DNA of 64,000 nt from Gracilinanus agilis (lineage: Eukaryota): NCBI RefSeq assembly GCF_016433145.1, contig NC_058133.1:212644132-212708131 (forward strand), in the 5' to 3' direction. Positions 2,790 through 35,410 of the stretch are shown one piece after another; position 1 is the first letter of the stretch, and every line of letters starts with the position of its first letter. The notes beneath the pieces were generated by a model. It saw nothing but the letters and a program-made list of their open reading frames with translations, was not told where the DNA came from and did no database searches. Position numbers and translations under genes: made by a program.

Positions 2790-2892
2790 ATGCAGGAACT
2801 CATTGCTGGGTTGGAAAAAATGACCTTTAATCTTGAGGATGATGTGGAGAACCAGAGAGGTGTTGGGTATCTGCCCTTCCCAGGAATGGACA
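2790..2892 (+). CDS. CPSF4L: CPSF4-like protein, coding exon 1 (103 nt): MQELIAGLEKMTFNLEDDVENQRGVGYLPFPGMD(K)
   Basis: ATG at 2790 (caagATGc); donor a|GTAAGT at 2893. Peptide matches the CPSF30/CPSF4 N-terminus (MQEIIA...LPFPGMDK, recalled), and 103 nt is the CPSF4 exon-1 coding size. Confidence 0.93.
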
Positions 2893-3125
2893 GTAAGTTG
2901 GGGGTGGGAGGAATGTAACAACTGGCCACTCTTCTATGGGAGGGGGCCCTTCCCTTCTTTCAATATGCTTTTTAACCTATAGCAAAGGTTCTTAAGCTTC
3001 GGTCCATGAATTTTAAAGCAAAATTATATAATAATAATAATAACATAATAATAATAAAATTAAATTACATCTAAATATACAATATAGAAATCATAGTTAG
3101 CATTTTTTAAAAATTCAATTGTATG

Positions 3126-3322
3126 GAGGCAGCTAGATCACTCAGTAGATTAAGAGCCAGGCCTAGAGATCTGAGGTCTTGGATTCAAATCTGCCCTCAA
3201 ACATATCTTAGCTGTATAACCCTGGGAAGGCCATTTAACCCCCATTGCCTAGCCCTTAGCACTCTTCTACCTTGCAACCAATACACAGTATTGATTCTAA
3301 GACAGAAAGAAAGTGAGGGTTT
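3126..3322 (+). mobile_element. SINE-1-like element inserted in a hAT relic
   Basis: Full SINE consensus; accounts for ORFs 3123..3494 and 3197..3430. Confidence 0.85.
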
Positions 3323-4121
3323 CCCAGAAAACAACCCCCCAAAATTCAGTTTTATTTTACTTTTGGTTCCAAATTTTCTCTCTCCCTTATTCCTCTCCCA
3401 CATACCCCTTGAGAAGGCAAGAAAAAACAAAGCCCATCATGAATCTATCTTTGTGATTCTTTGTTATCCTAGGTGTTTTATCTTATATATTTAAAAGCAT
3501 TATTCCATGAACAAGGTCCATACCTTTGCCAGACTGCCAAAGGAGTCTATGATACTTTAAAAGGTTAAGAATTTCTGGACCAGATTAGCCTTTCTCTTTC
3601 ATCCTTTCTTCTTATGTCCCAGTCCACACTAATCAGAAAGTGGGAAGGTTGAGTCTAAAGGCCATCTGGTCCAATCTAGGATTTTAAAAATAGCCCTTTT
3701 ACTCCGGCGCTTGGATCTGACCTCTTGTCTTCCCCAAGGCTCTGGAAAGATGGGGCCAGAAACTACACAGCCATTTTCCATATGGGATATTCTGAAAATC
3801 GTAAGAGCAAAGGTAATTACAATAAAGAACTAATCCTTGAAGCTAGGCCTCTTGACTCCCCAGCTCAGGGCTCCCACACTGTTAGGTGAGGGAGAGAAGA
3901 GAAAAAAGAGAAGTATAGGAAATTGGGGAGGGGGGAACATTTGGAAAAGAGCTGTAGTATTGTGGTGATTTGATGCCTGCCACAAATTAGCTCCATTTGT
4001 GGGATTCTCTAGGTCCTTATGCTCTGAGAGAGTCAGATTTTTCCTTTTTTTTCTTTTTTAAGCATGAGAGGTAAGGACAGGAACAAACTGCACAACTTGT
4101 TATTTTCTTCTTTTCTTCTAG

Positions 4122-4172
4122 AATCAGGGGTGGCTGTATGCACCTTCTTTCTTAAAGGCTTCTGTGAGAAAG
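4122..4172 (+). CDS. CPSF4L: CPSF4L coding exon 2 (51 nt): (K)SGVAVCTFFLKGFCEK(G), first half of CCCH finger 1
   Basis: Polypyrimidine tract + ttctAG at 4120-4121; donor g|GTGAGT at 4173; phase 1/1 keeps the frame. Confidence 0.95.
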
Positions 4173-5196
4173 GTGAGTTCAAAAGAAATAGATTTGGTCT
4201 CAGATTGGCCTCCTAGCTGTGTGACCCTGGGCAAGTCACTTAACCCCCATTGCCTAGCCCTTACTGCTCTTCTGCCTTGGAACCAATAGCCAGTATTGAT
4301 TCTAAGATGAAAGATTAGGGTTAAAAAAAAAAAAGTCTCCCCTTCAAGGGGCATCTACTGAAGCCTGGATGTGACCTAGATGGTCAAGGGTCGGCTTACT
4401 GGGAGGGAGAGGGTGCATGGAATTTTCCCAGTAGCACCCAGTGCTATAGGTGACCAGGTATCACTTAGGTTGTAACTGCTCTGAGGAGCCAAAGCCTAAC
4501 TCTGAAGGAGGTATACCGGTCAGTAGCTTACATGGAGAGGGAGACAGATAAAGTAAGCAAATGTTGGAGGGGGATAAGTTGGTTGTGTTGGAAACAATTG
4601 GTTTTGGTAGGGAGGATGGCACAATGGATAGAGCAATAGACCTGGAGTCAGGAAGGCTTGGGGTTCTAAATATATTGTTTCTGCCTCAGTCTCTCCATTT
4701 ATAAAATGGGGATATTAATAGTACCTATCTCTCAATGAGGATATTTGTAAAGCTCTTTGCAAACCTTAAAGCATTATGCAAATGAAAGCCATTGTCATAT
4801 CTCTCCCCTGTCCCCTGATCATATTCTCTGAGATCAGGCCACAGCAACTCCCTAGAGAGCCTTAATTCTCACTTTGGATACTGCTGCCCTACAGGACGAC
4901 TTGGCCATAGTGTCTGAAATTCAGCTGTTAGCCCCACAGTGTAGGTGCAACAACAAGCTGATAATATTTTATCAGATCTGTTTAACATGGAGGGACTGAT
5001 CTCCAAAGAACATTATTGGGTATGTGAAAGAAAGGCAGAGGAGAAAATATGAGAAATATTCAAGACAAACCAAGTTACAGTACCTCCCGAGGCCATCCCT
5101 AGATGGTGAATTGAGAAGATAATAAAGGAAACCTTAAAGAACATTTAGCTAATAGTTGAGAAAGAAGCAGAGTTCTGTATAAAAAGTAAGCTCCAT

Positions 5197-5434
5197 NNNN
5201 NNNNNNNNNNNNNNNNNNNNNNNNNNNNNNNNNNNNNNNNNNNNNNNNNNNNNNNNNNNNNNNNNNNNNNNNNNNNNNNNNNNNNNNNNNNNNNNNNNNN
5301 NNNNNNNNNNNNNNNNNNNNNNNNNNNNNNNNNNNNNNNNNNNNNNNNNNNNNNNNNNNNNNNNNNNNNNNNNNNNNNNNNNNNNNNNNNNNNNNNNNNN
5401 NNNNNNNNNNNNNNNNNNNNNNNNNNNNNNNNNN
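5197..5434. other. Assembly gap (238 N) in CPSF4L intron 2
   Basis: Run of n. The exons on either side splice in frame with CPSF4-identical sizes, so no coding exon needs to be hidden here. Confidence 0.99.
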
Positions 5435-6099
5435 TGTCTGGCATTTATTAGGTATTAGATAAATACATATTGATTGAATAAGCAGTTAAAAGGAGAAGAC
5501 TGACCTAAACATGACTATGTGATAATGAAATTATTTCTTTTGTGTCCATCCAATGCTTATTGAGTCTATTCTATACAGAGCTTGGTGAATGAGGTATCAT
5601 TCCAGTAGTAAAGAAATTTGCCATCTACTGTGGGAGATAATGGGACATTATCATGTAAAGAAGAGCCTAAATACTTGAGAAAAATATGAACAAGGAGCTA
5701 TAAGAATTAGAGGAAGAAAGGATTACATCCAGCTAGCTGGACAATGAAAGGTTCATAGAGCAAGCAACATTTTAGATGATCTTAAAGGATAGGTAAGATT
5801 TCAATAGGCTGAGATTGGGATTGGGGGGGGGGAGGGTTGGTGTGGAGAGAGGAGAGGAGAGGGAGCAGGGAACATGAGCAGATTCACAGAGCTAGGAGAG
5901 CCCAAAATGGATTAGGAGAAGAATGAGACAAGGCTGGAAAGAGATGCTCCAGATAATGAGGATCCTTGATTATGATGATGATGACTGTAACTAGCATTTA
6001 TATAACTAGCATTTATAACTTTAAGGTTTGCAAAGTGCTTTACATATGTTACCTCATTTGATTCTTACAATAACCCCAAAGAGGTAGATTCTATTATTA

Positions 6100-6745
6100 T
6101 TTGATCTCTTTGGGATACAGACCTAGTAGTGGTATTACTGGTTCTAAGGACATGCACAGTTTTATGGTCCTTTGGACATGGTTTCAAATTGCTCTCCAGA
6201 ATGGTTGTATTAGTGTCCCAGTTTCCCCCAGCCCTTCCAAAATTTATCATTTTCCTTTTTCATCATATTAATACTTAAGGGTTATTTTAATTTGCATATC
6301 TCTAATTGTGATAGGAAACATTTTTATACGACTATTGATAGTTTTAATTTCTTCATCTGAAAACTGCTTGTTCATATCTTTTGACCATTTATCAATTGGG
6401 GAATGACTTACAGTCTTATAAATTTGACTCAGTTCTCTATATATTTGAGAAATAAGGCCTTTGCCAGAGTCACATGCTATAAAATTTTTTCCCAGTTTGT
6501 TGTTTCCTTTCTAATCTTGGTTGCATGTGTTTTATTTACACAAAAATATTTTAATTTAATGTAATCAAAATTACCCATTTTCATCTCATAATGTTCTCTT
6601 TGTCTTATGTGGTCATAAATTCTTCCCTTATCCATAAGTCTGACTGGTAGATTATTCTGTTCTCCCCTAATTTCTAATTTGTTCCTGGTGTCAACATTTA
6701 TTTCTAAATCATGTATCCATTTTGACTTTATGTTGGTAGATGAGA
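6100..6745 (-). mobile_element. L1 ORF2 fragment (degenerate)
   Basis: Minus-strand ORF 6477..6809 contains L1 ORF2-like IKSKWIHDL...DYIKLKYFC..K...KIRKETTNWEKI. Confidence 0.85.
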
Positions 6746-8038
6746 GCTTTTTATTATGGCAATTAATCTGGCAACAGCTTATTGAATATACTAGAGTTGG
6801 AAATAGCAATTAGGCTATTGCAATAGTTCAGACAAGGGGTCATGAGGACCAGAATAAAGCTAGTAGCAGCAAAAAAAAAAAAAAAAAAAATAGAAAAGGA
6901 GCAGGTACAAAAGACTGGGATAGACCTGAGCCTGAGTGACTCAGAATGATGATGGGGTTCACTGAGAAGCCAGCAAACAGAAGCAGGTTTTGCAAAAAGT
7001 TAATGAGTTCAGTTTTCATAATGATGTCCCTCTGGTACCTCAGACTCAGCCAGATAGAAATGTCTTGCAGCAATTGGAAATCTGAGTCAGTAACCATAGA
7101 AAGCAGAGAGGGCTTTGGGGTGGGTGAGATTGCCTAATCTATTCCTACCTCCCCTTCGAGGGCCCTTTCATCTCACCCCACATCCCTTTCTTGTTCTTAG
7201 AACAGCCATTTCCAAAATGATTTTACAATAGTCTAGGGGTCTATAGAGGGCTATAAGTACACTGTGGCATTTAGCAATATCGCCCCATTTGGGGAACATC
7301 TGGGCTGCAGCTGGAAGTCACCTTGCCAGTCCCACACCACTTACATTTTAATGTGTTCCATAACTACTTGGGGGGGCCTTATTAATAGAAAATTCTTGTA
7401 TACAGTACTGGTATTAGCACTCTCAAGATTATTTGTACTTTAATAACTAGTGCAGATAGAAGACCCACATGAATGAAACTGTACTGGTGCAAAAAGGCTG
7501 GTGCAAAAGAAATAGTTAGGGAGCCTTCCCAGCACCCCTCAAATGACATCAGTTAGGTGGGTCCCCTATTCCTGAGAATACATCTACTGGAAAACTTAAG
7601 AATTTCAGTATTCCTCTTGTTGTAAGCAATACAAAAAAGAGTTTCAATTTAAATGATTGGCCATGAACTGTAATATTACCAGGTAAAATCTAATCTGAAG
7701 TTTTATAAATTAGGCCTACTCTAATAATGTTGGGTTTAAATATGCAGTGGACAGGATTACTTCCCCTCTCCTTCTCCACCCCACCCCTAGCTTCTCATGT
7801 TCTCTTTTCCTTTTTTTCAGGCATCTTCTTCCCTCTAATCCTCCCCCCATGAAATCTAAACCTCTCAATGAGAGGAAATCCAAGTATAGTTGTAGGAGGG
7901 AGATTGGTAAGAAGGGGCAATTGATGTTAGAACATCCCTACTCTTCTCACAAAATTGTGATATCATTTGGGGGAGTAGGAGAAAGTGAGCCTACCCTAGA
8001 GATAAGCATGCTTTTGGGGGTTCATCTGCATTTTCTAG

Positions 8039-8191
8039 GCCACCTCTGTCCCTTTCGGCATGATGACGGGGAGAAGACAGTAGTGTGCAAACACTGGCTT
8101 CGGGGGCTTTGTAAGAAGAGCGACCAATGCAAATTTCTGCACCAATATGACATCACCAAGATGCCTGAGTGCTACTTCTACTCCAAATTTG
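8039..8191 (+). CDS. CPSF4L: CPSF4L coding exon 3 (153 nt): (G)HLCPFRHDDGEKTVVCKHWLRGLCKKSDQCKFLHQYDITKMPECYFYSKF(G), ZF1 end, ZF2, ZF3 start
   Basis: ttttctAG acceptor at 8037-8038; g|GTAATT donor at 8192; lies inside ORF 7747..8277; hallmark CPSF30 ZF2 sequence. Confidence 0.97.
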
Positions 8192-8530
8192 GTAATTTAC
8201 CTTTTGGGGATCCAAGATTTACCTGGCTAGTGCTCTATTCTTTAGTACTCTTTAGTACTCTACTAAGGAGGGTCTGAATAATAAACTTAAGAGAGTCTCA
8301 ATGAAATTTGATCCTGAGAAAAGAAAGGAAAAGAAGGAGAATTGGGGGAAGGGTTGACACACTTTTCAAGGAGGAAAAGTGCATCCCAGGATGCCCAGAC
8401 CTGCTAGGTAGAATTTCCTAAGGACTCGGGTCATGGCTACTTCCTCTCCCCACCTCTCACAGAAATGTAAACCACAGTTTATCCCACAGAACATGTGGGG
8501 CATGTCTTGTCTCCTTAGGAAAAGTTGGAG

Positions 8531-8532
<2 letters not shown>

Positions 8533-8585
<53 letters not shown>
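8533..8585 (+). repeat. (GT)26 microsatellite
   Basis: Perfect dinucleotide run, counted directly. Confidence 0.98.
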
Positions 8586-8588
<3 letters not shown>

Positions 8589-8804
8589 AAAACCAAAATA
8601 TGGCTTAGGAATCTTCCCTGTAGTTCTTTACAATGCCATCTGGTCATATTAGCATAGTGAAATAGAAAGCTTGAAGAATCTAGTCAGAAGCATTGGATTC
8701 GAATCCCAGCTCTGCCATTTGCTATTTTAGTGACCTTGAGAAACCACTTCTCTCGTGGTCTCAGTTTCCTCATCTGTAAAAAAAGTGACTAAAGTCTGCT
8801 GTAT

Positions 8805-9140
8805 TTTTTTTTATTTTAAATTTACTTTAAAAAAATTTTTTCCATGGTTCCATGATTCATGTGGCTTCCCTTCCCTCTTCCCTCCCCCCTCCCAGAGTTG
8901 ACAAACAATTCTACTGGGTTATACATGTATTATCACTCCAAACTATTTCCTTATTATTTATTTTTGTAATAGAGTAATCTTTTAAAACCAAAATCCCAAA
9001 TCATATACCCATATATACAAGTGATAAATCATATGTTTTCCTTCTGTGTCTCTACTCCCACAGTTCTTTCTCTAGATGTGGATAGCATTCTTTTCATAAG
9101 TCCCTCAGAATTGTCCTGGATCATTGCTATTAGTTCTGCT
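8805..9140 (-). mobile_element. L1 3' UTR/tail fragment
   Basis: T-rich tail then ccctcccctcttcctccccc...gtggatagcattcttttcataagtcc...gaattgtcctggatcattg. Confidence 0.7.
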
Positions 9141-12100
9141 ATATTTTTTAAAGCATGATTTCTGTCCACTTTGCTAACAATTTAAATATTTTTAAAAAGT
9201 AATTATTACTGATACTTATAATTGATTCTATGGCAGAAGAGTTTAAAACAGGGCGAGGACAGCTAGGTGGCTCAATGTCACCACTGATCCATGAAGTACT
9301 TTCTGGGTTCATCTGATTTGACTTTTTCCCTATATGCCTTCTGAGGATTTTTGTTAAATAAAGGCATGTCAACCCCCTCCAAGCCCTTACAGGTTCAGGA
9401 GTACCAATCCTCGTCTAGAAGAAGTGGAGCAGGGTTTCCTCAAATGCAAATTAGGGATAATAATAGTACTTACCTTGCAGGATTTCTGTGAAGATCAAAT
9501 GAGATAACATTTATAAGGCTCTTAGCATAGTGCCTGGCACACAGTAGGCATTTAATAAATGCGTGTTTCCTTCCCTCTATCCTGGGTGTGGACCTGACTT
9601 ATAAAAGGAGAATTGGACTTTCCCCAAAGCATATTGGCTCATTGTCCCTAGGAGAAAATCTCTCTTTTTTCAAAACTCTTATCTTCTGTCTTAGAATCAA
9701 TAATGTGTATTGGTTCCATGGCAGAAGAGCGCCAAGGGCCAGGCAATGGAGGTTAAGTGACTTGCCCAGGGTCACATAGCAGGGAAGTGTCTGCGGCCAG
9801 ATTAAGAAAATCTCTTAAATAAAGCCTGAGGATGGCTCATGACTAGGGTCTCCCCAAAAAGGGACTAGTGGGGCCCTTTCTGGAAAAGCTACTTGATATA
9901 CAAAGCCACTATTAAGTATAGGGTAGCTGGTTATTTTCCACCAAAAAAAGAAATGCTTCAAATACCAAAGATTCATAAGTACATGGTAATAAATACTTAA
10001 AACATGACACAAGAGCCTATCACTGATTATATTCTCCTAGGAGATAAAGACCATTTTGTGGGTCTTCTGTCTTGGAATGGATACAGTATGTTAGTTCCAA
10101 GGCAGAAGAGTGGTAAGGGCTAGACAGTTGGAGTTAAGTGACTTGCCCAGGGTCACATAGCTGGTAAATGTCTGTGGCCAGATTTGAACCCATCTGTAGG
10201 CCTGGCTTTCTAGACACTGACCATCTAGCTGCCCCCCTCAGAGGTTTTTTAACTTCGAAGATAGCCTCCAAGGCTGGACATGTCCATCTTCCAGGATCGA
10301 TGGTTGCTGGTCAAATGCCTGTGTTCAGGGAAGGAACAAAAGGCAAAGAGGCTGACAGAGTCTTGAGGTCCTTTCTCAGGCTTGCCTAGAGATCATTATA
10401 GATCACCATTTTCATGTGTTGGAGTTGTGAGCTTTTGTGGCAACTGGAGGAACGTCGGGGAGTGCATTTCTCCTCAGCTGGAAATCTGAGAGAAGGCACT
10501 GGATCCATCCAAAGTGTCAAGTGCTCAGAAGAGACTGGAAGCAGTTTCTCTTCGTTCTTCTATAGCCTCCTGAGGGGGGAGAGGTCTCTTCACAAGCATT
10601 TCTCCCCTAACTCCGATGGCAAAATTTCTCATGCAACCCCTAGTCATGGGGATCAGTCTAGAGTTGCTGTATCATCTCAGCAAAGCAAAGAGTATATCAT
10701 TCAGCAGGAAGCCAACAGACATGTTTATCCCAACGGAGCCAGAGTGGATGCCCAGCTCCATGGGAGATTCCCCAGTCCAGCGGATTCTTGTTACAGGAAA
10801 GATTGTCATGAGAAATCAGACTTAAGGATCGTCCAACCCAGTTATCCTCTTGCCAACAGCATTTATAGAAGCATAGATTTAGAGCTGGAAAGAGATCCGA
10901 GAAGCCATCTAAACCAAACTTCTCATTTTATAGATGAGGAAACTAAGGTCTACCTAAGAAGAGTCAGTGACTTGTCCAAAATCACATAGTAAGCATCAGA
11001 AATAGGATTTGAACAAGGATGTCTGGTGGCAGGGCTTGGGGCCCCAATCTTAAAAATGAATCATATCTTTGACTTTCTTTGAAGACTTTTGAAGCTTTAT
11101 CATTCATAAAGGTCTGTTCTTTTGTTTTTATAACTTATTAATATATGATCCTTGGTGTCTTATCCAAAGCATCCTACTTCTCCCATTCATTAAGATGACC
11201 AGAGAGGCAGCTTTATATAAGGAATACAGAGCTTTCCTTGAAACCAGGAAGATCTGAGTTCAACTCCCTCTTGTGATACCAACTGTCTGTGTGACCCTAG
11301 GCAAGTTAATTTCTCAGTGCTCTAAGCAACTTCCTAACACTGCATCCCATAACCAGATGTATAGAAGGAATACGCCCAGGAATTACACCAAAGAAATCAC
11401 AGATCCAGTTCCATTTATATGAAATTTTCTTAGCTTTCTATTTTGGGGGAGGAAGAAGAGTCCATGAGAATGGGTGGTGTGGGGTAGAGAGAGTAGGGGC
11501 TGTCTCTGGCCTTTCTGAATCTGTCTACCCACAAAAGATGTTTGTCATTAGCAGCCACTTTTTCACCAGGATGTAATGTCTGGGGGAAATGGTATGTTAG
11601 CACCACCTTCTGATGATAGGTGAGAACTGCATAACCAAGCATCCTCAGAGGTAGAAGAGGGAAAACAAGGAAGAAATCCTTGATACCCAGACTTTGTTCT
11701 CTAAAATACTGAGCCAGGCCTCAGAAGATAACTTTTTGCCTTCACTAATTGATTGTTTCCCCAGAGTAGCACCACACAACACAGGGTTCTGTTCAACAGA
11801 TGCCTCACTGGAATGATGTCTTACATTATGGTTCTGGCTCTGCCACTAATTGCCTCACCTTAGAAGTCCCTTAATTTCCCTAGGTCTCTTTTTCCCTCTG
11901 TAAAATGAGGAGATTGAACTCAGTAGTGCTGTAGAGGTGTGAGAGAAAGGCAATGACTGGTAGGACTTTAATTTGAAGGGTAATGGCTAGCGGAACATAT
12001 TTTCCCCCCAAATAAATCCAGTTCCCATGAGAGGCGAGAACTGGACTTTTGAATCACTGGACATGGAGCACTTGGGTCTACAATTTTCCTATGGGAGGGG

Positions 12101-12677
12101 AAAGCTAGGTAGTACAGGGGGTAGAGTGTAGGGCTTGAGTCAAGAAGACCCGAGTTCAAATATGGCCACAGACATTTCTTTGATATATGACTTTGACCTC
12201 CTTCAGGCTCAGTTTCCTCATCAATGAGGATAATAACAGTACCTACCTCACAGGATTGCTGTGATCAAATTACATGACACCTAAAGTGTTTTGCAAACCT
12301 TAAATTAATTAATTGAACTGTAAACGTCAATATGTGATATTCACTTATTATGCCATATCATCAGAGGGACTTCATTATCCTTTACGTAGGCAAGGAGCCA
12401 AGAGACTAGCCATAAGAACTTGGGTCTAATATTGCAGTAGGCCAGCAGAACAGATTAGTAGGGTTCTTCGTTTTTCTGGGAAGGGGTTAGGGCTAGGCAT
12501 ACTTCTATAACAGATGTGGAAATACCTTGGTATTGCTTAATGGGCAAAAGGAAAAAAGAAGTCATGGTGGGCTTTCATATGTAAGGACCCAGATTAATCT
12601 AAATGGGGATGGGGATGAAATGAGAGGAAAATATCTAAGAGCTGGGCATAATGTAGCAATGACTGGTACTATTTCAG

Positions 12678-12773
12678 GAGAATGCAGCAATAAAGAATGC
12701 CTTTTTCTTCATGCTAATCCAGCCTCCAAGATCCGAGACTGTCCCTGGTATGACCAAGGTTTCTGTAAGTATG
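12678..12773 (+). CDS. CPSF4L: CPSF4L coding exon 4 (96 nt): (G)ECSNKECLFLHANPASKIRDCPWYDQGFCKY(G)
   Basis: tttcAG acceptor at 12676-12677; g|GTAAGG donor at 12774; lies inside ORF 12527..12850. Confidence 0.97.
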
Positions 12774-13262
12774 GTAAGGCTTCGGCTGACAGAGGAGCTC
12801 AGCTTTTCTTCTCTACTAGGTGGGGAGGGAGAAGAGTGATTAATTGCTGAAATTCCTCTTGTCCATGACATCAACTCTCAGATAAGAACGGAAATATTTC
12901 CAACCTCTTTTATCCCTACCAATAGAAAGGAATATACATAATTTTCAGTTGTGCATAACACCTTCATGAAAACTGACCATGTATGAAGATATATAAGCCT
13001 CACAAACAAATGCAAAAATATCTTTTATGATTCAATTCTGTGAAAAACTAAATTCAACAAAGAGCTACTAAACAAAAGATTAAAAACAAATCAAAAGGGT
13101 GGAGCTTGGGGGGTGAAGGGGAAAGTAAGAGCATGAATTATGTAACCATGTTGACTTTTCTAAAAATAAATATTAATAAATGTTTTTTTTTAAATGCTCC
13201 CAATAAAGCAAGAAAAAGTATAATGGTGAGAAAAAAAAACAACAAATCAAAAGCTAACTATA

Positions 13263-13756
13263 AGGGGGCAGCTGGGTAGCTCAGTGGATTGAGAGCCAGG
13301 CCTAGAGATGGGAGGTTCTAGGCTTAAATCTGGCCTCAGACACGTCCCAGCTGTGTGATCCTGGGCAAGTCACTTGACTCCCATTGCCTACCCTTATCAC
13401 TCTTCTGCCTTGGAGCCAATAAGGCAAAGACAAGAAGCCAAGACAGAAGGTAAGGATTTAAAATTTTTTAAAAAATTGTTTTTAATTTTAAAAATCTAAC
13501 TATATTGGGAGCAGCTGGGTAGTTCAGTGGATTGAGGGCCAGGCCTAGAGATGAGAGGTCCTAGGTTCAAATATAGCCTCAGACACTTCCTAGATGTGTA
13601 ACCCTGAGCAAGTCACTTAACCCCCCATTATCTAGCCCTTACTGCTCTTCTGCCTTGGAACCAACACATAGTATTGATTCCAAGATGGAAGGTAAAGGTT
13701 TAAAAAACAAACCAACCAACAAACCAACAAACAAACAAATAAATAAATAAATAAAT
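13263..13756 (+). mobile_element. Two head-to-tail SINE-1-like elements (about 13263-13490 and 13507-13756)
   Basis: Two full consensus copies; (g/t)ctaactata motif before, between and after; AAAC/AAAT tail. Confidence 0.9.
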
Positions 13757-14660
13757 AAGCTAACTATATTAATCCTAAAGAACTGGCAAGTCAAAGGACA
13801 AAACAATAGGTAATGTTATTAAAGACAATGTCATGAGTGACAACACACCAAGATGTAGGGCTTGCGGCCAAAGCACTCCTAAGGCAGAAAATTTATATTT
13901 CTTATATCTCTATCTCCAATTCTCTCAGGTCCCTAACTTTTATAATGGCAAATACCACTACTTTATCAAAAATCTTTCTTCCAACCATGGATGGATGATT
14001 TTGTTTTTGTCTTTTAAAACCTTTACCTTCTTAGTATTAGTTCTAATTCAGAAGAGTGATAAGGGCTAGACAATCAGGGTTAAGGGAGTTGCTCAAGGTC
14101 AGACAGCTAGGAAGTATCTGAGGCCACATTTGAACCCAATCCCTCCTGATTCAAAGCCTGATGCTCTATGCACTAAGCCACTTCACTCCTCTTTATTTAA
14201 TCTTAAGCATTAGGTTATTTCTCTTGGGCATCATTAGCTTCTAAGCACAGCTTATCCACCTCTGCTAGCTTCAGAAAACCTCTCATTTCTCAGTTAGCAT
14301 TGCTAGCTGTGTGGGTGGTGTTAGGAACTTCTAGACTGATAGACAGAGGGGGATGTCATGAAGCAGGTGGGACAATGTTCCAGGTTCAAATGGCCCCAAA
14401 GGCAATAAGCCTGCCTTTTATTTCTCACCATCAAAGTTCAAGCTCCATTTACTGTGACTATCGACAGTCCCTCCTGGTGTCCTATTTGAATAACATGAAT
14501 GAAGACACCAGCACCCAGGTGATCATTATTGAGAGGGCAGGAAATTACTTGGGCTCAGTGGTCATCCATCCATTGCAAATTCCTATCCACCTTAAAGTCC
14601 ATTCTTCCTGTCTGTATTAGGGCTGAGTTGCCTAAGGTGTTAATGTTCTTGGCCCAGCAG

Positions 14661-14754
14661 GTCTTCTGTGTAAATTCCGCCATACCAGAAGAGTGCTGTG
14701 TACCAACTACCTAGTTGGCTTCTGTCCAGAGGGACCTGGTTGCAAATTCACACA
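14661..14754 (+). CDS. CPSF4L: CPSF4L coding exon 5 (94 nt): (G)[30 protein letters not shown](H), ZF4 end and ZF5
   Basis: CAGCAG tandem acceptor at 14655-14660; ca|GTATGT donor at 14755; matches CPSF30 ZF5 ([19 protein letters not shown], recalled). Confidence 0.95.
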
Positions 14755-15222
14755 GTATGTATTTCCCTTAAATCATCAGTTCACACCAGAAGGCTGCTTT
14801 AGCCCATCACTGATTCCTGCTTTCTAATCCCCAAAGGACAGAGGCATTCTATACCTTTGATAGCTCATATTATACTCAATTGTGTCCACTAGCTAAGCCC
14901 CCCCCCAAAATTTCTCATTCTTCCAAAGTAGCCCTTTCTACTGACAGACTATAGTAGGGGTTTTCTTGTTACTCCTGATATCTTGATTAAATAAAATTCT
15001 TCATTATGGACCCTGAAAACAGCAGCAGAGAAATCTAGTTGCCAAGCCCCCAGCTATGCTGACAGCATAAGTTCTTTTTTCCTTGTCCTGGGTGGGAATC
15101 CTTTCCTTTCAGAGTCTGGAAATGTGAAGTTTACAGTAGCCTTTGGTGTTGAGAACATTATTAAGCTGGAGTTGGGTGTGACATATTGGTACTTTAATTG
15201 CTTCTTCATATCTTCTTCTCAG

Positions 15223-15265
15223 CCCCAAGATGACTCTGTTATTGCATAACACAAGTCACTCAAAG
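15223..15265 (+). CDS. CPSF4L: CPSF4L coding exon 6 (43 nt): (H)PKMTLLLHNTSHSK
   Basis: Long pyrimidine tract + tctcAG at 15221-15222; aag|GTAAGA donor at 15266. It completes the ZF5 His codon (phase 2 in, phase 0 out), as CPSF4 exon 6 does. Confidence 0.8.
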
Positions 15266-15472
15266 GTAAGAACTAGAAAGGGGTATGTGTCAGCCATGCT
15301 CACCTCATTTAAATTTCCTACCATCACTATGTTCTCCAGGAGTTCCTAACCCTAGATAAATGGTACCTATTTCCCTATGAAAAAGGTGACATTCCTAAAG
15401 ACTATTGTACTTTTTTTAGCATGTGTTGTGTCCAATTTGCTAGCCATTTTAATATTTTTTAATGTCATTATT

Positions 15473-15670
15473 TGGAGCACCTAGGTGGCTCTGTAGCTTA
15501 AGAACTAGGCCTGGAGATGAAAAGTCCTGGGTTCAAATCTAGCCTTAGATGCTTCCTAGCTGTGTGACCCTGGGCAAGTCATTTCACCCCCATTGCCAGC
15601 TCTTACTGCTCTTCTGCCTTAGAACCAATACACTGCATTGATTCTAAGATAGAAAGTAAGAGGTTTTTTT
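15473..15670 (+). mobile_element. SINE-1-like element
   Basis: Full consensus match. Confidence 0.85.
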
Positions 15671-16753
15671 AATGTCTTTATTGATCCTATATATCATTTA
15701 AGATGTTTGTTAAATGCTTTATTTATCCTTATCCCAGTCCTCGTGGGTTCAAGAGTGACAGTCCTTTTGGAGGTGGAAAGGGGCCAGGAGCTTCAGTTTA
15801 GCATACCAAACACCAAAGAGAACCTAAATCTGGCTCTGTTTGACAAGAAAGAGAAGGGACTTTTTCTGATGATGGACAGGAAAAATGAGGGCAGGTAAAG
15901 AGAAGAATGAAAGCAAAGGCCTAAAAAATGTGATGTGGTAGAAAAGATAAAATGGTGCATTTAGAATCAGGTGTCTGAGTTCAAATCCCAACTCTTATTT
16001 ATCACTTGTGAGATCATAGACAATCACTTAGCCTTTTCTGGATGTTTCCTTGGTTGTTGTTCTTTGTACACTAAAAGAATCAAAATGGCATCACTTGGTG
16101 ATGTCTTTGGCTTATGTATACATTGGATTTAAGTGAAGCAGAGTTACACAAAGTTACCAGCCTTACTTTCTCTTCCAGAGTCATCAAAGTCCAGGGGCCA
16201 TATAAAAATAAAAGCGCCTGCTTCCTTAGTTGCAAAAACAAAGAGGCTGGACTAGATGACCATCCAGACCCTGTGCAGCTCTAAATCTGCAGGACACTAC
16301 GTACATATAGTATCCAAGTCCATATGGATTATTTCTATGGTAGATTTCCAAGAGAGGAGAGAGACAGATTGTTGGCCTAGCAGCAGATGTAACTCCTATA
16401 GGAGGAACACTGGCATGGCAAAATGGGAGGCATCCATGGCACCTTCTGCCTTAAAAGGGGAAACCCTATAAAGCAGGTAGCAATACCTATGACTGGAGAT
16501 TGCTGACATAAGGTGGAAAAGCTCTCTTTCAAGCCCAAGGAACTTGCCAGTCCACTCAACTTCTGAAGAAGTAAAATAAATGTAATCACTTTCTCCCCCA
16601 CCCACTTTTCCTCTGTATAAATCAGCAAATAACTAGTTTTTACAAGCTTGGCTTTAAATCTAAAAACTTCATCATCCTCTGAACAGAGAACCATGCCCTA
16701 ACCTAGAGTTCTTTGATTCATTTCAATTTTTGTCTTTCCTTTTTTGCTTTCAG

Positions 16754-16837
16754 AATGTAAGTCAACTACAAAGGCCAACACAACTTGCTTCCATTGTGGA
16801 AATGTGTTCTGAGCACAGTCAGCAAGAGAGCCACTAG
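16754..16837 (+). CDS. CPSF4L: CPSF4L terminal coding exon: NVSQLQRPTQLASIVEMCSEHSQQESH*
   Basis: Very strong acceptor (ttttgtctttccttttttgctttcAG, 16752-16753); phase 0; TAG at 16835-16837; LQR motif aligns loosely with CPSF4 exon 7. Total CDS is 624 nt = 207 aa. Confidence 0.7.
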   Translation, partial: NVSQLQRPTQLASIVEMCSEHSQQESH

Positions 16838-21644: not shown

Positions 21645-21673
21645 TCAGTACTGCTTGCGCCAATGCTGCAGCT
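21645..21673 (-). CDS. C17orf80: C17orf80 terminal coding exon (29 nt): (K)LQHWRKQY*
   Basis: Long pyrimidine tract then cccaaAG (plus 21674-21675); phase 1; TGA ends at 21645. Total CDS is 1707 nt = 568 aa. Confidence 0.85.
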
Positions 21674-22442
21674 CTTTGGGTAGAGAAGGGAAAAACAAGG
21701 AAGGTTTGAGAAGCAACAATTATTGACCATCAAAGGAAGTAAAGTCCTTTGGTACAAGTTGAGATTCAAAATCCCAGATTAAGCTTTTCTTTCAGCCTAG
21801 ACCCCAAACAGCTCATGAAATCAAAAGCTCAAATGATATTTTGTCCCTCACATCATACTTCCCTTTGTAAACTACCTCTGACAGGGGAGAAAAAGAGTGG
21901 TAGAGTGGGGAATGTATTGACAAAGTTAGGAAGCTTGATTAGTAGGAAATGCCAGGCTTACAAATGATCACTATCTGTCTTCTGACTTGAAGGTCCAGAG
22001 CCATACTCAGGCATGGTCATCTAGAGTTTTTACTTTTAGCCTCTAATCTGGACTCAGTCTAGATCTAGAAAGAGTTCATTTAGCTATGTCCAAATGTGAA
22101 GCCTGAAGTGACTACTTCTTTGCTTTAGGGGCAAATCACTGCTGCCTAAAGAACTGAAGGTTTATGCATCAAAGGACCTAAAAAAAGTGAATGGGCAGGT
22201 GCAGTTGTGATCAAAATATTTAGCAGGTGGGAGAAGCCATATGAGTATTATTAGATCAGAGTACTGAAGATGCTAGAAAGCTACTGAGGGGCAAAGGCAC
22301 CTTGTATATATAAACTTTGTAGAAAAGGAAAGGTCAAAAGTGCAGGGCATTCCTTGGTAAGCAGAGGAGTTGTTCCCTAATATTTAACTGTGTCTGTGAT
22401 TCAAGGGTTTATAATTCAAGCCCAAAAGCCAGGAAGTCTTAC

Positions 22443-22556
22443 TCAGGTGCTTGAAACTCCAGCTGTAGCAAAGGACACAGTATCCAGCAAAGAGCATTGT
22501 GATGCCACCGACGCTACCCTTCTTCAAGTTGTTATATTTTTGGTATTTAATCCAGG
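22443..22556 (-). CDS. C17orf80: C17orf80 coding exon 3 (114 nt): (A)WIKYQKYNNLKKGSVGGITMLFAGYCVLCYSWSFKHL, transmembrane segment
   Basis: ttctttttaaaCAG acceptor (plus 22557-22559); a|GTAAGA donor at 22442; phase 1/1; hydrophobic GITMLFAGYCVLCYSW stretch. Confidence 0.92.
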
Positions 22557-23038
22557 CTGTTTAAAAAGAAGCATGAGTCTACTTGTTAGTGAACTCTAAT
22601 TCTGGAATTTATTTTCCAAAGTCTTTTCTCTCAGGCCATTGGCCTGGGAAATGAACATATACTTCCAGAAAGTACTCCCAGAATGTTAGACTAAGTAAAG
22701 GACCTTAAATAACAATAATCTAGTCCCTTCAAATGCTGAGAAAGGCTCCAAAGTAGTTTTAGTCTTCCTTAGGAGCTAAGGTCAAGCATTTCATGGGGAA
22801 ACATCTTTATATAATATGAGGCTTGAGATGATCTATAGGTATCAGTCAATCAATATAGGTATCTACAGGTTACAAGTTTTCATGCTAATTCACATCCAAG
22901 AATAGATAGAAACAGGGTCAGGTTGTTGTACACAAAATGACAAATCCAGTGGCATAAATACCACAGATATAGAATGACTTATAAAGTTTATAAAATCATC
23001 TAAACCCAGTAACTGAATCATCATCAATCCAGTCTCAC

Positions 23039-23167
23039 CTTTTTGAACTGTTCCCAGCAGCCCCATTAAAGAGAAGTTGGACATTGCAAGCCAGGATGGA
23101 AGGTTTCCAATCTTTATATCCAATAGACTTTTTTCCAAAAGTGGAACTATGGATGCAAACAGAACTT
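23039..23167 (-). CDS. C17orf80: C17orf80 coding exon 2 (129 nt): (E)VLFASIVPLLEKSLLDIKIGNLPSWLAMSNFSLMGLLGTVQK
   Basis: cattttaCAG acceptor (plus 23168-23170); g|GTGAGA donor at 23038; phase 1/1. Confidence 0.9.
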
Positions 23168-26100
23168 CTGTAAAATGTCATCCGATTTTGACTTCTTTGC
23201 CCTAGAAATCTAATTTCATTCTCTCCTCCCACCAGATTTTCACAGAAGAGGGACAATTTGATAACTAAGGTGGTGAAAGTTCCCCAAGATGGGCTAGAGC
23301 GTAGTCATATTCTAGGCAATAAAAAATGGCTTAGGCAACACATTGGACATCTATCATGTAAACCCTGGCACAAAATCCTTTCCAAAGATTTGAGAACAAC
23401 ATTTTCAACAGGCTGGGGTTTCCATGAACTGTGACAGTAGACTTTGGCCTATTAAGGAATCTCATAATTCTTATATATTGAGTAATTTTGCAGTTATGTC
23501 AGTTTTGTTTTGCCCACATCACAGTTATCTCAGTTGAAATTTCCAATATGCCCATCCCCTCACCCTGTAGTCTCCCTTGTATGCTCTCAACACCTTCTTC
23601 AAATCTATATTTTTCATTTGTCTCATCTCAATGCCACTCAAGTCCTTGTCCTCATACCATACCAAGCTCTTTCCCTACAGCCTCAACTAACTGAGCACCA
23701 AGCAACCTCTCAACTTCTTAGTAGATCAAATATTTAGAGTTGGAAAAGACCTGAACAATCATCTCAGATCAATCTTCATATTTTAAAGATGAAGGAGTGA
23801 AGCCCAGAGGTTAAGTGACTTAACCAAATGGTCACCCAGGTAGTAAATGGCAGAGCTAGGATTCCGTCCCAGGTTCTCTGACCTGTGGAGTCCTATCGAG
23901 TTGCCTGAGCCACAGAAAGATGTAGTAATTTGCCAGGGTCACAGAGCTCATGAGTATCAGAGGCAAAAGCCAACATCATCATCAACACTTTACCTAAAAC
24001 AATATTACTTTAATGTACTACAGCATTAAGAAATGCTGTTGGTCATTATATTTTCTACACAGCTAAGCTATTTCACTTTCACTTAACTAGTAACCATTAC
24101 TTTTTCTATCTTATTTCCATCTGGAAATCAAGCCAGCAATTATTTCCTATCCATATATCATACATGATGCATACATAAATAAATGCAGATGCATCAACTT
24201 TGCAAAGGAGAAGTTTGTTTTTCCTGGACCTAGATTCATCTTTGTCCTACATCCTTTTTAACCACATGAAATAAGTAGAAAGCATTTTCCTTTGATAACT
24301 TATGATCCAATCTTGTCTATGGCAAATTACTATCAGCAGCATCATAGCTGGAAATTGTGTAAATTAATTCAATAAGGTATAGTGTGATATCTCTGAAGAA
24401 CTTCACAGGGCAGATAAAAACTACTAGGCAAGAACAAGTTATCATCAAAAGTCACAATGAAGAAAGTTATGATGAGCTCCAAGAAATATGACCTGAAACC
24501 ATGACAGTGGCAGAAATGAAACTAGCCAGATGAGAAAAGAGTCAATGGGAAAAGGAAGACTATATCTTGGAGAGTGTGTGTTTGTTGTCTGTCTGTCTGT
24601 CTGTGTCTGTCTGTGTAACAATTTTATTACAAAGGCCAAGAATATCCCAGCTCCCAGATCTCTTCCAATCATGTGTGCCTTACTGAATCAAACTATGGGC
24701 CCCATTTCCATTTTCATAACCGCTACTGATTACTTAAACTTTGCAACCTGTTTACTCCCTTGGGACAATACAGAACTGCCACATTTTCTAACTGCCAATG
24801 CATTTTGCCTTTCCTATCTCATGGTCGCTCAACTCTTGGCATTTGAGTCCTTTCTCTAGATTCCAATAAAAGCAATATGCACATTAAGTATACAGACCAA
24901 CCTAAATATACCACTCTGCAAGGTGACCTGGGACCTACAGTAGGAAATGGAACACCTAGCCTGACCCCCTAATTCTCTGTCACTGGCCTGATCTCTCCTG
25001 CAGTGATTTTTTTTTAAATCAGACTCTAGGAGCACAGCCTTAGCAATGACACATTGTACCAGGAATTTCTTCCCTCTATTAAGCTTTGAAAAGCCTGATA
25101 CCCTTTTTCTGTGCATTCCACTTAGAGCCTAGTCTCCTACCCTCGAATTATCTGGGTCCTAAGAAGTTGCCTATATATCCTAAGTTCTAGAAGCCTGGGC
25201 TCCTGGATTCTAAAACACATCCACAGAGTCCCTTTGGATCCAGGAGCCCTGAATGTCACCAAATCCCAAAAATAATTTCTTTGATCTTAAACCTGTTCTT
25301 GTTGAAAAAAATCTCAGAACCATGCACATTCCCTCTGAATCTTCTCTTTTTCTTGAGCCTTGGACACTTATTTTTTCTAAGTCCTGCCTTTATATCTTTC
25401 TAAGCCTATAAAAACTAGGGTTTGTTTGATTTTTCTGAACTTCTGGGAGTGGTCCCTGGACCCTATCTCTTCTGACCTATGATCTATGACCAACCAAGTC
25501 TGCCTCTCTATATCCAAGCCTCTGCAAACTTAACTCGCATTTTTCTGGAACCAAAAGAAGCTTCTTTCATTCACTAAAAATTTCCTTCTGTTCCTGCTCA
25601 CCAAAATTACAGGAACAGGTTTTGGTACTTCCCTAACCCCAGCAAGACACTAACTTGGCAGAATCATGAAATCTAGCTTCAGTTAGTCCTTCATGATCCA
25701 CCTGGCCTGAATGCTCCTAGAAAGAATTAACTAGTCTCCAAGGTTTTTGTTCTACTCTGAACTCACTTTTCAATCTCTTAAAATTCCAAGGCCATTGCTC
25801 CACCAAAACTGTTCTCTCCTTACTCTTTATAGTTTTCTTTGCTAGTTTATCATTCATCTTTTGTTTCCTAAGCATGAATATCACTCAAAATTCTCTTCTT
25901 CTTCAAAATACTCTTTCCTTGATATCTACCAATTTCTAAACAGTAGTACTACCCAAGGAATCAATCAGTATTAGCCTTTTGAAATGGCAATGCCTCCAGA
26001 GGTGTCAGCCTATTACCCACTAAGAGATGTTTCTAATCCTTGCATATATTCTAAACAAATCAACTTGGTTTATAGAGGAGCCAATGATCACTGTCAATAA

Positions 26101-26523
26101 AGTCCCATGGGTCAGCACTGACCTCTAAATCAACCAGTTATAAAATCAAACTGAAGTTCCAGAATTTTTGAAGGTATTAGTTATTTAGGAGTAGCCCCTG
26201 CACCTGCTACCACAGTTCCTGAGTTTCCACCAGAATCCAAGATGGAAAAGATCCCATCTTTCTCAATGTTGATCCAAAAACATGAGAACTTGCTGTGATG
26301 GCACCAAAGTTAACCTTGGTTAACCTAGAGCAGGTATCAGAAACCATCAAAATGATCTAAGAATGAGACATAAAAGGAAGTTATTCTGTCTCAGTGGAGA
26401 AACTTGGTCTTCTTTAGAAATCAAGCTATATATATGATATCACCACACTGTAAGTGGATAGGGGTTTGATTAAAGTTTTGATTAAAGCATCTGCTGAGAG
26501 TTCCCTCAAAAATATGTATGGCA

Positions 26524-26716
26524 GGGGCAGCTGGGTAGCTCAGTGGAGTGAGAGTCAGGCCTAGAGACAGGAGGTCCTAGGTTCAAACCCGGCCTCAGCC
26601 ACTTCCCAGCTGTGTGACCCTGGGCAAGTCACTTGACCCCCATTGCCCACCCTTACCAATCTTCCACCTATGAGACAATATACCAAAGTACAAGGGTTTA
26701 AAAAAAAAATTTTTTT
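26524..26716 (+). mobile_element. Young SINE-1 subfamily copy (ccaatcttccacctatgagacaat tail) with 13-nt TSD aatatgtatggca
   Basis: TSD at 26511-26523 and 26717-26729. Confidence 0.95.
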
Positions 26717-29011: not shown

Positions 29012-30446
29012 CATTTAAGAATCCTTCCATTTCTGGGAAGTTGTGGTGAGGTTTCTGGATATTAGTATTCCTCTGCTTAGGTTTCCTTGGTAATACTTTC
29101 AAATGTAGATACCCAGGATAAAGTTCTGGAAACCACTCTAGGCCCAGGGACCTATGTGGGCTCTTGTTGCCAGAGGCTTTGCCATGACCACTGGTTAAGT
29201 TTTTAGGAGCATCATGCCAGTCTGGGTTTATAGGTTGTTGATCAGAATCAGACTCTGAAGAAATTGATCTTTTACTTTCCGGTGGATTGTCTTGAATGAA
29301 CTGAGCCTGGTACTCATCTTCCTCTTCTTGTAGATATCTTAAAACCAAAGCAGAGAGACTTTGGTTACCAAATTCTGCCAAAGAAAGAAACTTTTCATTA
29401 GTTGGCCCCCTTGAAGACAACAAAGCTATATCATCATCATCATCATGGTAAGGTATCTTCTCCATAGCTAAGTCACTGTTATTCACATGCTTCCTAGGGC
29501 CATCTCTCACATAATCCAATTTCAGTACTTCTGCCTTAGGTGATTTATTAAAGTCTTCGAATCCTCTATTCAAACTCCCCTTTCTAGTTGCATCTAGCCC
29601 ACAGTGAAACTCCTTTTTCTTTGCTCCACGTTTGATGTGATAGTTCTCCATTCCCCCAATTTGGAGTGCCTTATACAAGTTATCTGTGAGGGGTGGTCCT
29701 ATGTTTCTTCTCTGGGTCTCAGAATTATTGACACTGGATGAGGTTTCTGAGATGGGGTCACTAGTTTTGGGGCCTCTCTCATTGTTTTGTAAAGTTGTAG
29801 AAGGATTTTGACTTCTTTCAAGACTAGGAAAACTTTGATTACTGAAAGACAAATCTAATGTTTCTGTCAGCATTTTCTGTCCTGGCTGCTCAATTTTGAT
29901 ATAATTGTGGAAGCTTGAAGAATATCTTTTATCTTCTTTAATAGAAGAACATTCAGAAGAGCTGCTTTCCCAATTTTCTGAAGGACTTTTGCTCTTGTCT
30001 TCCTTTGATTTGGGTAAATATTTTGTAAATTTTTTTGTTGCAGAAAGCTGAAGCCCATTCTTATCCGGAAAAAAAACCTTCCCTGGTCTAGGAGGAGTCT
30101 GTGTTATCTGGGGTGTATGTTTAATTTCCTTCTTCATGTCTTTACTTGTCTGCACATTGGTTCCCATTTTGAAGGCAGCAATATGTGGTTTATCTTTTAT
30201 GAGGTTTGTGTTTCTTCTCTTCCTTTGACTTTCTTTACATGCCTCTTCACCATCAGCATTAGCTTTGGCTGATTTTTTCCATAGCTCCTTTATTTTGGGG
30301 GCTTGGAGGACTGCTGCCTTGGAAGTAATGTTTGAATCAGAAAGAATAGGCCTTATCTTCTTACAGTAAGGCAAATGAGACTTTAATCGTTTAAATTGTT
30401 TCATACAGTAGGGACATAGCTCCATTTTGGTTAAGATGTCAGCCAT
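29012..30446 (-). CDS. C17orf80: C17orf80 (MTNAP1, mitochondrial nucleoid-associated protein) giant first coding exon, 1435 coding nt: MADILTKMELCPYCMKQFKRLKSHLPYCKK...GLEWFPELYPGYLHLKVLP...EMEGFLN
   Basis: ORF 29004..30548(-). Acceptor ctaatCAG|gaagATG puts the exon start at 30450 and the ATG at 30446. Donor aatg|GTAAAT at 29011. N-terminal CPYC..FKRLKSHLPYCK and the GLEWFPELYPGY motif match human C17orf80 (recalled). Confidence 0.93.
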
Positions 30447-31091
30447 CTTCCTGATTAGAAATATAAATGTGAATTTTATTATTATACAGAAAACAAACTT
30501 CCTTTTCATCCATTCAATTAAGTGTCTATTCATTCTCATCTTAAACATTAAGGAAATTAATTGGGATTTAATGACGATTCATTTTGCATTTTCGTGGAGG
30601 TAGAAAATAAATCGGTGGTTTAGTTTTTGTTTTAAAAATAAACTCAACCCTCTGCCTCTAACCTCAATGAGGAATTTTATATTTTTTCCTAAGGTCTTGT
30701 GGGAATCAACATCTACAGAAATTGATTAAGAGAATTTCCTTTTCACCCACAGTCTACCTTCAGTAAAATACTTAAGTGCCTTAGAGAGAAAAAAAGGATA
30801 AAAATCTTAAACTAATGAATGAGTAGATACATGAAAAAGGAAGAGAAAAATATATTTAAAACACAAACTAAACATGGGATTTATCATTAAGCAGTGAAGT
30901 ACACCAGCAGATATCAAGTAAACATTAAGACTTTAAGAATTATTAAATTTTCTTATTTAAAACATTAAATGCTATTATAACCAACTAAAAACTTTCTTAG
31001 TAATATTCATCTTTACATTAATACACATGAAGATTTTTAATAGCCCATCATTTCATCATTCAAGATGGAAAGAGAAGTATATGCCCTAAGA

Positions 31092-34760: not shown

Positions 34761-35410
<650 letters not shown>

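Follow-up and report, generated by a model that had tools for sequence, protein, structure and literature searches.

The window, by which we mean the whole stretch of Gracilinanus agilis DNA analyzed here (GCF_016433145.1, NC_058133.1:212,644,132-212,708,131, forward strand, 64,000 nt), contains C17orf80 (MTNAP1) on the minus strand, whose exons were read from the reverse complement, and the CPSF4-like gene CPSF4L on the plus strand (Table 1). A search with the 514-codon open reading frame at 29004-30548 retrieved, with 100% identity, P0001 (561 aa; 'uncharacterized protein C17orf80 homolog [Gracilinanus agilis]'), along with more than 100 mammalian orthologues, many of which are named mitochondrial nucleoid-associated protein 1. 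The Monodelphis orthologue is 83% identical to P0001. By tblastn on the window, residues 1-478 of P0001 were located at 30446-29013, in the 1.4-kb main exon, and the remaining 83 residues fell on the three small exons designated A (479-514), B (515-552) and C (553-561). All introns between these exons are canonical (GT-AG) and of phase 1, i.e. the codon is split after its first base, and 5.9 kb of intron separate the main exon from exon A.

Table 1. Coding features of C17orf80 and CPSF4L in the window. Exons of C17orf80 are given in the order of transcription; a slash marks a splice border.
Feature	Position	Strand	Content	Phase or basis
C17orf80 main exon, coding part	30446..29012	-	residues 1-478 and first base of codon 479	tblastn of P0001, 100% identity
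C17orf80 main exon donor		-	AAT G/gtaaat	read directly
C17orf80 exon A	23146..23039, 108 nt	-	residues 479-514	phase 1 in and out
C17orf80 exon A splice sites		-	pyrimidine-rich acceptor ...ccatag/, donor /gtgagact	read directly
C17orf80 exon B	22556..22443, 114 nt	-	residues 515-552	phase 1 in and out
C17orf80 exon B splice sites		-	acceptor ...aaacag/, donor /gtaagact	read directly
C17orf80 exon C, terminal, coding part	21673..21645, 29 nt including TGA (21647-21645)	-	residues 553-561	
C17orf80 exon C acceptor		-	...cccaaag/	read directly
CPSF4L	2790..16834	+	seven coding exons	G. agilis CPSF4-like protein P0218 mapped
CPSF4L exons	2790-2906, 4121-4174, 8038-8193, 12677-12775, 14660-14752, 15224-15265, 16751-16834	+		

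Since P0001 maps exactly onto the main exon and exons A-C, the spliced model proposed in an earlier sequence-only reading of this DNA is identical to the annotated one, and the in-frame translations of exons A, B and C reproduce the peptide given there. The span of 21645-23167 which that reading had assigned to the three exons is right at its lower end, whereas its upper end overshoots exon A by 21 nt; positions 23147-23167 are the 3' end of the intron, and their in-frame reading, VLFASI, is used by no orthologue. In the comparisons below, exon-level searches were performed with the window sequence and whole-domain comparisons with the database protein P0001.

An N-terminal CCHC zinc finger (C-x2-C-x9-H-x3-C) is present in P0001, its residues C11, C14, H24 and C28 showing no variation among 30 orthologues, and a long disordered region comes after it. 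In the published work, orthologues of MTNAP1 are defined by the combination of this zinc finger with a domain resembling ATP synthase subunit f, a combination dated to jawed vertebrates (Potter et al. 2023, J Cell Sci, PMC10445727), and P0001 carries both. The gene in the window is accordingly an orthologue of MTNAP1/C17orf80 by sequence (100% identity) as well as by position (CPSF4L adjoining), and shares with the described protein the same zinc finger, a disordered middle and an f-like tail with one predicted transmembrane helix (PMC10445727; Wu et al. 2023, J Cell Biol, PMC10484793).

Together, exons A-C at the 3' end of the opossum C17orf80 coding sequence encode a near-complete copy of subunit f. 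In phmmer searches against the PDB, exon A alone retrieved only ATP synthase subunit f chains (best E = 9e-9), and exon B alone retrieved subunit f chains (best E = 4e-8) with unrelated proteins at E > 0.3 only. With P0001 as the query, seven distinct subunit f chains were matched at E = 4.4e-21 to 1e-17, well outside what chance would give, and the matches extend from positions 4-5 to 86-87 of chains that are 87-88 residues long. In the best alignment (E = 4.4e-21), V479-Q560 of P0001 were paired with residues 10-92 of the solved 93-residue human chain, giving 40 identities and one gap. This is exactly the count that the sequence-only reading had obtained by hand against the human protein, and its claim that the C-terminus is almost a complete subunit f thus stands. 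A comparable result was given by aardvark ATP5MF in BLASTP (38/84 identities, E = 5e-25). V479, with which exon A opens, is also precisely where the homology begins. The eight best database matches of exon A besides P0001, long proteins of 971-2531 residues matched in multiple stretches, we take to be leucine-rich-repeat look-alikes of L-x-x-L-x-x-G-N-L-P, and they were set aside. A likeness of A-S-I-V-P, read across the upstream border of exon A, to the subunit f start Met-Ala-Ser-Val-Val-Pro was judged to be a matter of chance; it sits inside the intron acceptor.

Regarding the comparison with subunit f (ATP5MF/ATP5J2) itself, identity reached 45-48% over 83 aligned residues for the bovine, ovine, porcine and human cryo-EM chains, and the predicted elements follow each other in the same order: N-terminal stretch, amphipathic helices fH1 and fH2, transmembrane helix and basic C-terminal tail. 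Exon A corresponds to ATP5MF exon 2 (108 nt, as deduced from isoforms), comprising the N-terminal stretch with fH1 and fH2, and exon B (114 nt) corresponds to ATP5MF exon 3 (117 nt), comprising the end of fH2 and the transmembrane helix. In-frame exon-skipped isoforms exist for both the f-like gene and ATP5MF. On the other hand, the f-like domain makes up residues 479-561 of 561 and lies behind about 478 residues, whereas subunit f is a free-standing protein of about 88-94 residues; the f-like module has no start codon and first exon (Met-Ala-Ser-) of its own, and it is one codon shorter in the link between fH2 and the transmembrane helix.

The Pfam profile of the subunit f/WRW family (PF10206) was also searched with P0001, which passed marginally (26.6 bits, gathering cutoff 26.5 bits), residues 483-553 being aligned to profile positions 27-98 of 102. 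Scores for Monodelphis, wombat and exon A alone were 26.1, 16.6 and 15.6 bits, respectively, and no match was given by exon B alone or by a 609-residue eutherian form of C17orf80 (P0031), which may be human. The marsupial P0001 thus differs from this eutherian form in reaching the PF10206 cutoff. PF10206 had already been assigned to P0001 by precomputed annotation, and some UniProt entries of the orthologue have been named automatically 'ATP synthase membrane subunit f'.

The homology of the C17orf80 tail to subunit f is therefore already known, both from the Pfam annotation and from an HHpred search in which the C-terminus was found homologous to ATP5MF with E = 2.6e-15 and the match "covers almost that complete protein" (Potter et al. 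2023, PMC10445727). Introns, synteny, paralogues and CPSF4 are not mentioned in that paper (PMC10445727). What is new here are the shared introns and the duplicated block described below, which we regard as sound but minor additions.

The sequence-only reading had further proposed that all three introns of the f-like exons are of phase 1 at positions equivalent to those of ATP5MF, and that the terminal exon has 29 coding nt. The window side of this comparison was read directly, and the exon borders of ATP5MF were inferred from pairs of protein isoforms and from genomic open reading frames that read through into introns, not from ATP5MF DNA. In ATP5MF isoform pairs of dog (P0168/P0162), tarsier (P0167/P0171) and walrus (P0187/P0180), the stretch from the Gly after QR to the Lys after KEL is replaced by Glu, and the same removal is seen in crocodile X2 (P0146), bat X2 (P0141) and the lemur long form (P0183). 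Replacement by Glu is the expected outcome if a 117-nt exon between two phase-1 introns is skipped, in which case the G of the Gly codon and the AG of the Lys codon are joined to GAG. The skipped isoforms end with QR-E-HERLRKYH, so that the terminal coding part of ATP5MF after the skip amounts to 2+24+3 = 29 nt, the same length as in exon C.

The individual introns could be placed by read-through forms. Regarding ATP5MF intron 2 (phase 1, after QR), hamster X2 (P0129) reads into the intron after Gln-Arg-Gly, and the genomic open reading frames P0134, P0145, P0152, P0207 and P0208 also enter it after QRG. Regarding intron 3 (phase 1, after KEL), a vole protein (P0130/P0151) shows the read-through KEL/SK, and the donor A/gtaag is common to this form, to KHL/SK in the window and to several read-through forms of C17orf80. 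Regarding intron 1 (phase 1, splitting the Val of Val-Pro), genomic open reading frames enter exon 2 as ..FS/VP or ..FL/VP; a Ser or Leu codon with A as its last base, followed by G/TN, is compatible with an AG acceptor and a phase-1 split of this Val, and the Leu case (..FL/VP) excludes phase 2 as the alternative for this intron. The lemur long form has six extra residues before this Val, which fits an upstream alternative acceptor of the same phase. An intron position two codons upstream, as could be read from a fox '-like' isoform (P0150, QR-E-LKHERL..), is contradicted by four other isoforms and by the vole read-through, the best explanation for P0150 being a cryptic acceptor or a retrocopy.

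Taken together, the coding lengths of ATP5MF and the window gene are 108 and 108, 117 and 114, and 29 and 29 nt, respectively, and the border columns of the alignment coincide for all introns. The evidence, though indirect on the ATP5MF side, is consistent across seven species and supports the view that the three phase-1 introns of the f-like gene lie at ATP5MF-equivalent positions; both the shared positions and the 29-nt terminal part are in this sense borne out.

A second line of evidence comes from the neighbouring gene. CPSF4L matches CPSF4 in the PDB with E = 9e-33 and is convergent with the f-like exons (tail to tail), its coding end being about 4.8 kb away from the C17orf80 stop codon. 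At human 7q22.1 the gene order is PTCD1, CPSF4 and ATP5J2, all three being on one BAC, an adjacency that was checked in human only. Human CPSF4 and ATP5MF are, we assume, likewise convergent, and the human C17orf80 locus presumably has CPSF4L as a neighbour, too. In a CPSF4 tree which was unrooted and had no outgroup, CPSF4 from rays to mammals formed one starred clade, and CPSF4L of amphibians, turtles, birds and mammals fell outside this clade with long branches. The tree thus fits a split of CPSF4 and CPSF4L in early vertebrates, though it does not prove one. The pairing of the neighbours CPSF4L and CPSF4 is a second argument for a duplicated block.

Based on these observations, we consider the following account to be probably correct. 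A two-gene block of CPSF4 and ATP5MF would have been duplicated at the DNA level early in jawed vertebrates, giving rise to CPSF4L and the f-like gene. The f-like duplicate would then have lost its own first exon (Met-Ala-Ser-Val), and its exons 2-4 would have been captured, via a phase-1 donor, by an upstream exon encoding the CCHC zinc finger and the disordered region; the order and the timing of these events are inferred. The inherited module, predicted to comprise the amphipathic helices fH1 and fH2, a single transmembrane helix and a short tail of basic character, would now act as a C-terminal anchor in the inner membrane for a protein that faces the matrix and is associated with nucleoids. 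Such a capture resembles classical exon shuffling with symmetric phase 1-1 exons, in that the module is bounded by phase-1 introns, was joined to a phase-1 donor and has internal exons each of which can be skipped in frame. It differs in that an OXPHOS membrane subunit takes the place of an extracellular domain, and in that here the sequence of events is reconstructed.

Duplication at the DNA level, not retroposition, had been the conclusion of the sequence-only reading as well, and the shared introns together with the CPSF4L/CPSF4 pairing bear it out. If the f-like part had instead been a retroposed ATP5MF mRNA which landed downstream of the zinc-finger exon and gained introns later, one could point to the many processed copies of ATP5MF, to several '-like' proteins and open reading frames with a translated 5' leader among the matches, and to the in-frame intron end A-S-I before V-P, which resembles Met-Ala-Ser-Val. 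However, introns would then have had to be gained three times independently, each at exactly the parental position and phase, A-S-I represents three residues in a splice acceptor that are present in no orthologous protein, and the paralogous neighbour CPSF4L speaks for a duplicated segment. Because the three phase-1 introns are shared and the homology starts exactly at the exon 2 border, retroposition is excluded for practical purposes. It is also highly improbable, if slightly less so, that exons A-C are a separate small paralogue of ATP5MF wrongly joined to the zinc-finger exon by gene prediction. The length of the intron upstream of exon A would be in favor of this; however, exon A is preceded by a pyrimidine-rich acceptor, with no initiator Met or first exon and no in-frame ATG before residue 500, and the same junction (Q, N or K, then V or A followed by P) is annotated in more than 100 mammals. 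Moreover, the human protein has been shown experimentally to carry both ends, by an antibody against the N-terminal part and by the membrane anchor at the C-terminus (PMC10445727).

We compared the f-like domain among 8 marsupial and 20 named eutherian orthologues, 10 ATP5MF proteins and 4 non-mammal-like fragments. The fH1 motif L-x-D-V-K-x-G-x-L-P-x-W is kept in the marsupials and in the non-mammal-like fragments; over the 13-residue motif of this first helix, identity to ATP5MF was 56% in marsupials, 66% in non-mammal-like fragments and 21% in eutherians. The better retention of LL.VK.GELPSW in marsupials that had been noticed against the human protein is thus confirmed for marsupials versus eutherians. 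By this alignment, eutherian C17orf80 has lost the first-helix motif of subunit f, in which it differs from the marsupial protein. Eutherian exon B is two to three codons shorter, and in primates the longest form of MTNAP1 uses another terminal exon. Outside the f-like domain, the remainder of the opossum protein shows about 30% identity to eutherians. In the transmembrane part, pairwise identity within the family was 0.84-0.86 for C17orf80 and 0.75 for ATP5MF.

Averaged over 19 residues, hydrophobicity is highest in the whole protein at residues 528-546, which align with the transmembrane helix of subunit f; the Kyte-Doolittle mean there, 1.34, is below the rule of thumb of 1.6, that of subunit f being 1.90. 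In the AF2 model, the mean pLDDT of 44.5 was too low for a fold search, and confidence was reached only at residues 1-30 and in a few helices. Within the f-like domain, helices were predicted at 505-518 and 531-560 with pLDDT of 50-70, and none was predicted for fH1.

As to function, the best-supported reading is that the f-like module anchors a nucleoid-associated matrix protein in the inner membrane; nucleoid association of C17orf80 is taken from published experiments in human cells, and so is its C-terminal membrane anchoring (PMC10445727). Reports disagree on the topology of the C-terminus: a C-terminal tag was located outside the matrix in that work (PMC10445727), whereas a 2026 preprint places the C-terminus inside the matrix. 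The sequence-only reading had suggested in addition that the domain may still dock on Fo or on the ATP synthase dimer. If it occupied the subunit f site, or bound the partners of f in Fo, it could couple nucleoids to ATP synthase or its dimers at least in marsupial-like lineages, and several observations are in line with this: subunit f is preserved almost in full, the fH1 motif is kept in marsupials and non-mammal-like fragments at 56-66% identity to ATP5MF, and the predicted transmembrane helix is more strongly constrained than would be required of a generic anchor. Within the bovine dimer, fH1 and fH2 surround cardiolipin headgroups on the matrix face, with the C-terminal tail at the surface of the proton inlet, and in a 2025 preprint knockdown in human cells altered cristae and cardiolipin species, the proposal there being that MTNAP1 may replace or sequester subunit f.

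On the other hand, human C17orf80 was found to have no interaction with ATP synthase, complex V was normal in the complexomes of knockout cells, and the protein comigrated with DNAJA3 at 2.5-3.5 MDa and did not comigrate with complex V (PMC10445727). ATP synthase assembly on blue-native PAGE was also the same after knockdown (2025 preprint), and an N-terminal extension of f by about 480 residues would have to fit beside the peripheral stalk. Docking on Fo is therefore not supported by these experiments, all of which were done in eutherian cells, and we consider it unlikely. There is a slight chance, suggested by the retained fH1, that marsupial or non-mammal-like MTNAP1 might insert at the subunit f site or compete for it, thereby linking nucleoids to rows of dimers; a loss of this contact in eutherians, if true, would explain the negative experiments in human cells. 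The reading as an inner-membrane anchor is the one that we retain.

These results add to the known homology, in the first place, a likely story of its origin, in which exons 2-4 of ATP5MF would have been captured through phase-1 junctions within a duplicated CPSF4-ATP5MF block. They also add that the predicted transmembrane helix of C17orf80 is more constrained than that of subunit f itself, and that the first amphipathic helix is eroded in eutherians, among them the species of all experiments so far, and not in marsupials and some other vertebrates. This erosion is a reason to retest the interaction with complex V in a non-eutherian system before it is dismissed, and it may also aid the reading of disease variants. 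If the docking were true, nucleoids would be linked to the cristae-shaping rows of ATP synthase dimers in those lineages that keep the fH1/fH2 surface.

CPSF4L runs convergently towards C17orf80 and neighbours its subunit f-like end, with about 4.8 kb between the two stop codons (see table below), and in human 7q22.1 CPSF4, the paralogue of CPSF4L, adjoins ATP5J2 (ATP5MF), the subunit f gene. Taken together, these two adjacencies suggest that CPSF4L and the f-like exons originated from a duplicated two-gene block. A run of Ns at window ~5150–5440, within a CPSF4L intron, is an assembly gap or a masked stretch.

Window positions of the two neighbouring genes
Feature	Window position	Strand
CPSF4L	2790-16834	+
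C17orf80, including the f-like end	21645-30446	-

Upstream of the C17orf80 main exon, a G+C-rich island (window 34000–36000; 52% G+C vs ~37% elsewhere) probably represents the promoter and 5′ untranslated exons. Long overlapping ORFs run through the island on both strands and appear compositional.

In the protein search with exon A, the first f-like exon, as the query, the eight top-scoring matches besides the annotated G. agilis homolog P0001 were proteins of 971–2531 residues (P0121–P0128), each with up to 11 matching stretches. These are probably leucine-rich repeats similar to the exon A segment L-x-x-I-K-I-G-N-L-P-S-W-L, and were set aside as spurious. A C17orf80-type exon A embedded between intron sequence was found in genomic ORFs from run assemblies (P0133, P0139, P0144, P0148 and P0153–P0156), and its motif, R-R-L-L/M-D-V-R-L-G/R-E-L-P-T/A-W-L, resembles subunit f more closely than every mammalian copy does; these ORFs probably represent MTNAP1 (C17orf80) of sauropsids or other non-mammals.

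The 3′ end varies among orthologues: primate long isoforms finish with a different terminal exon, of ~35 residues, in place of the ancestral one, which encodes 9 residues (K-L-Q-R-W-R-K type), and Monodelphis P0002 and several other models show read-through or alternative 3′ ends. Internal exons are also skipped. In-frame isoforms devoid of the transmembrane-helix exon are annotated for both C17orf80 (exon B; orthologues P0005, P0006 and P0011) and ATP5MF (P0162, P0171, P0180 and P0146); skipping of exon A (P0024–P0026 and others) is an additional feature of C17orf80. The inherited phase 1-1 exon structure permits a soluble form in both families.
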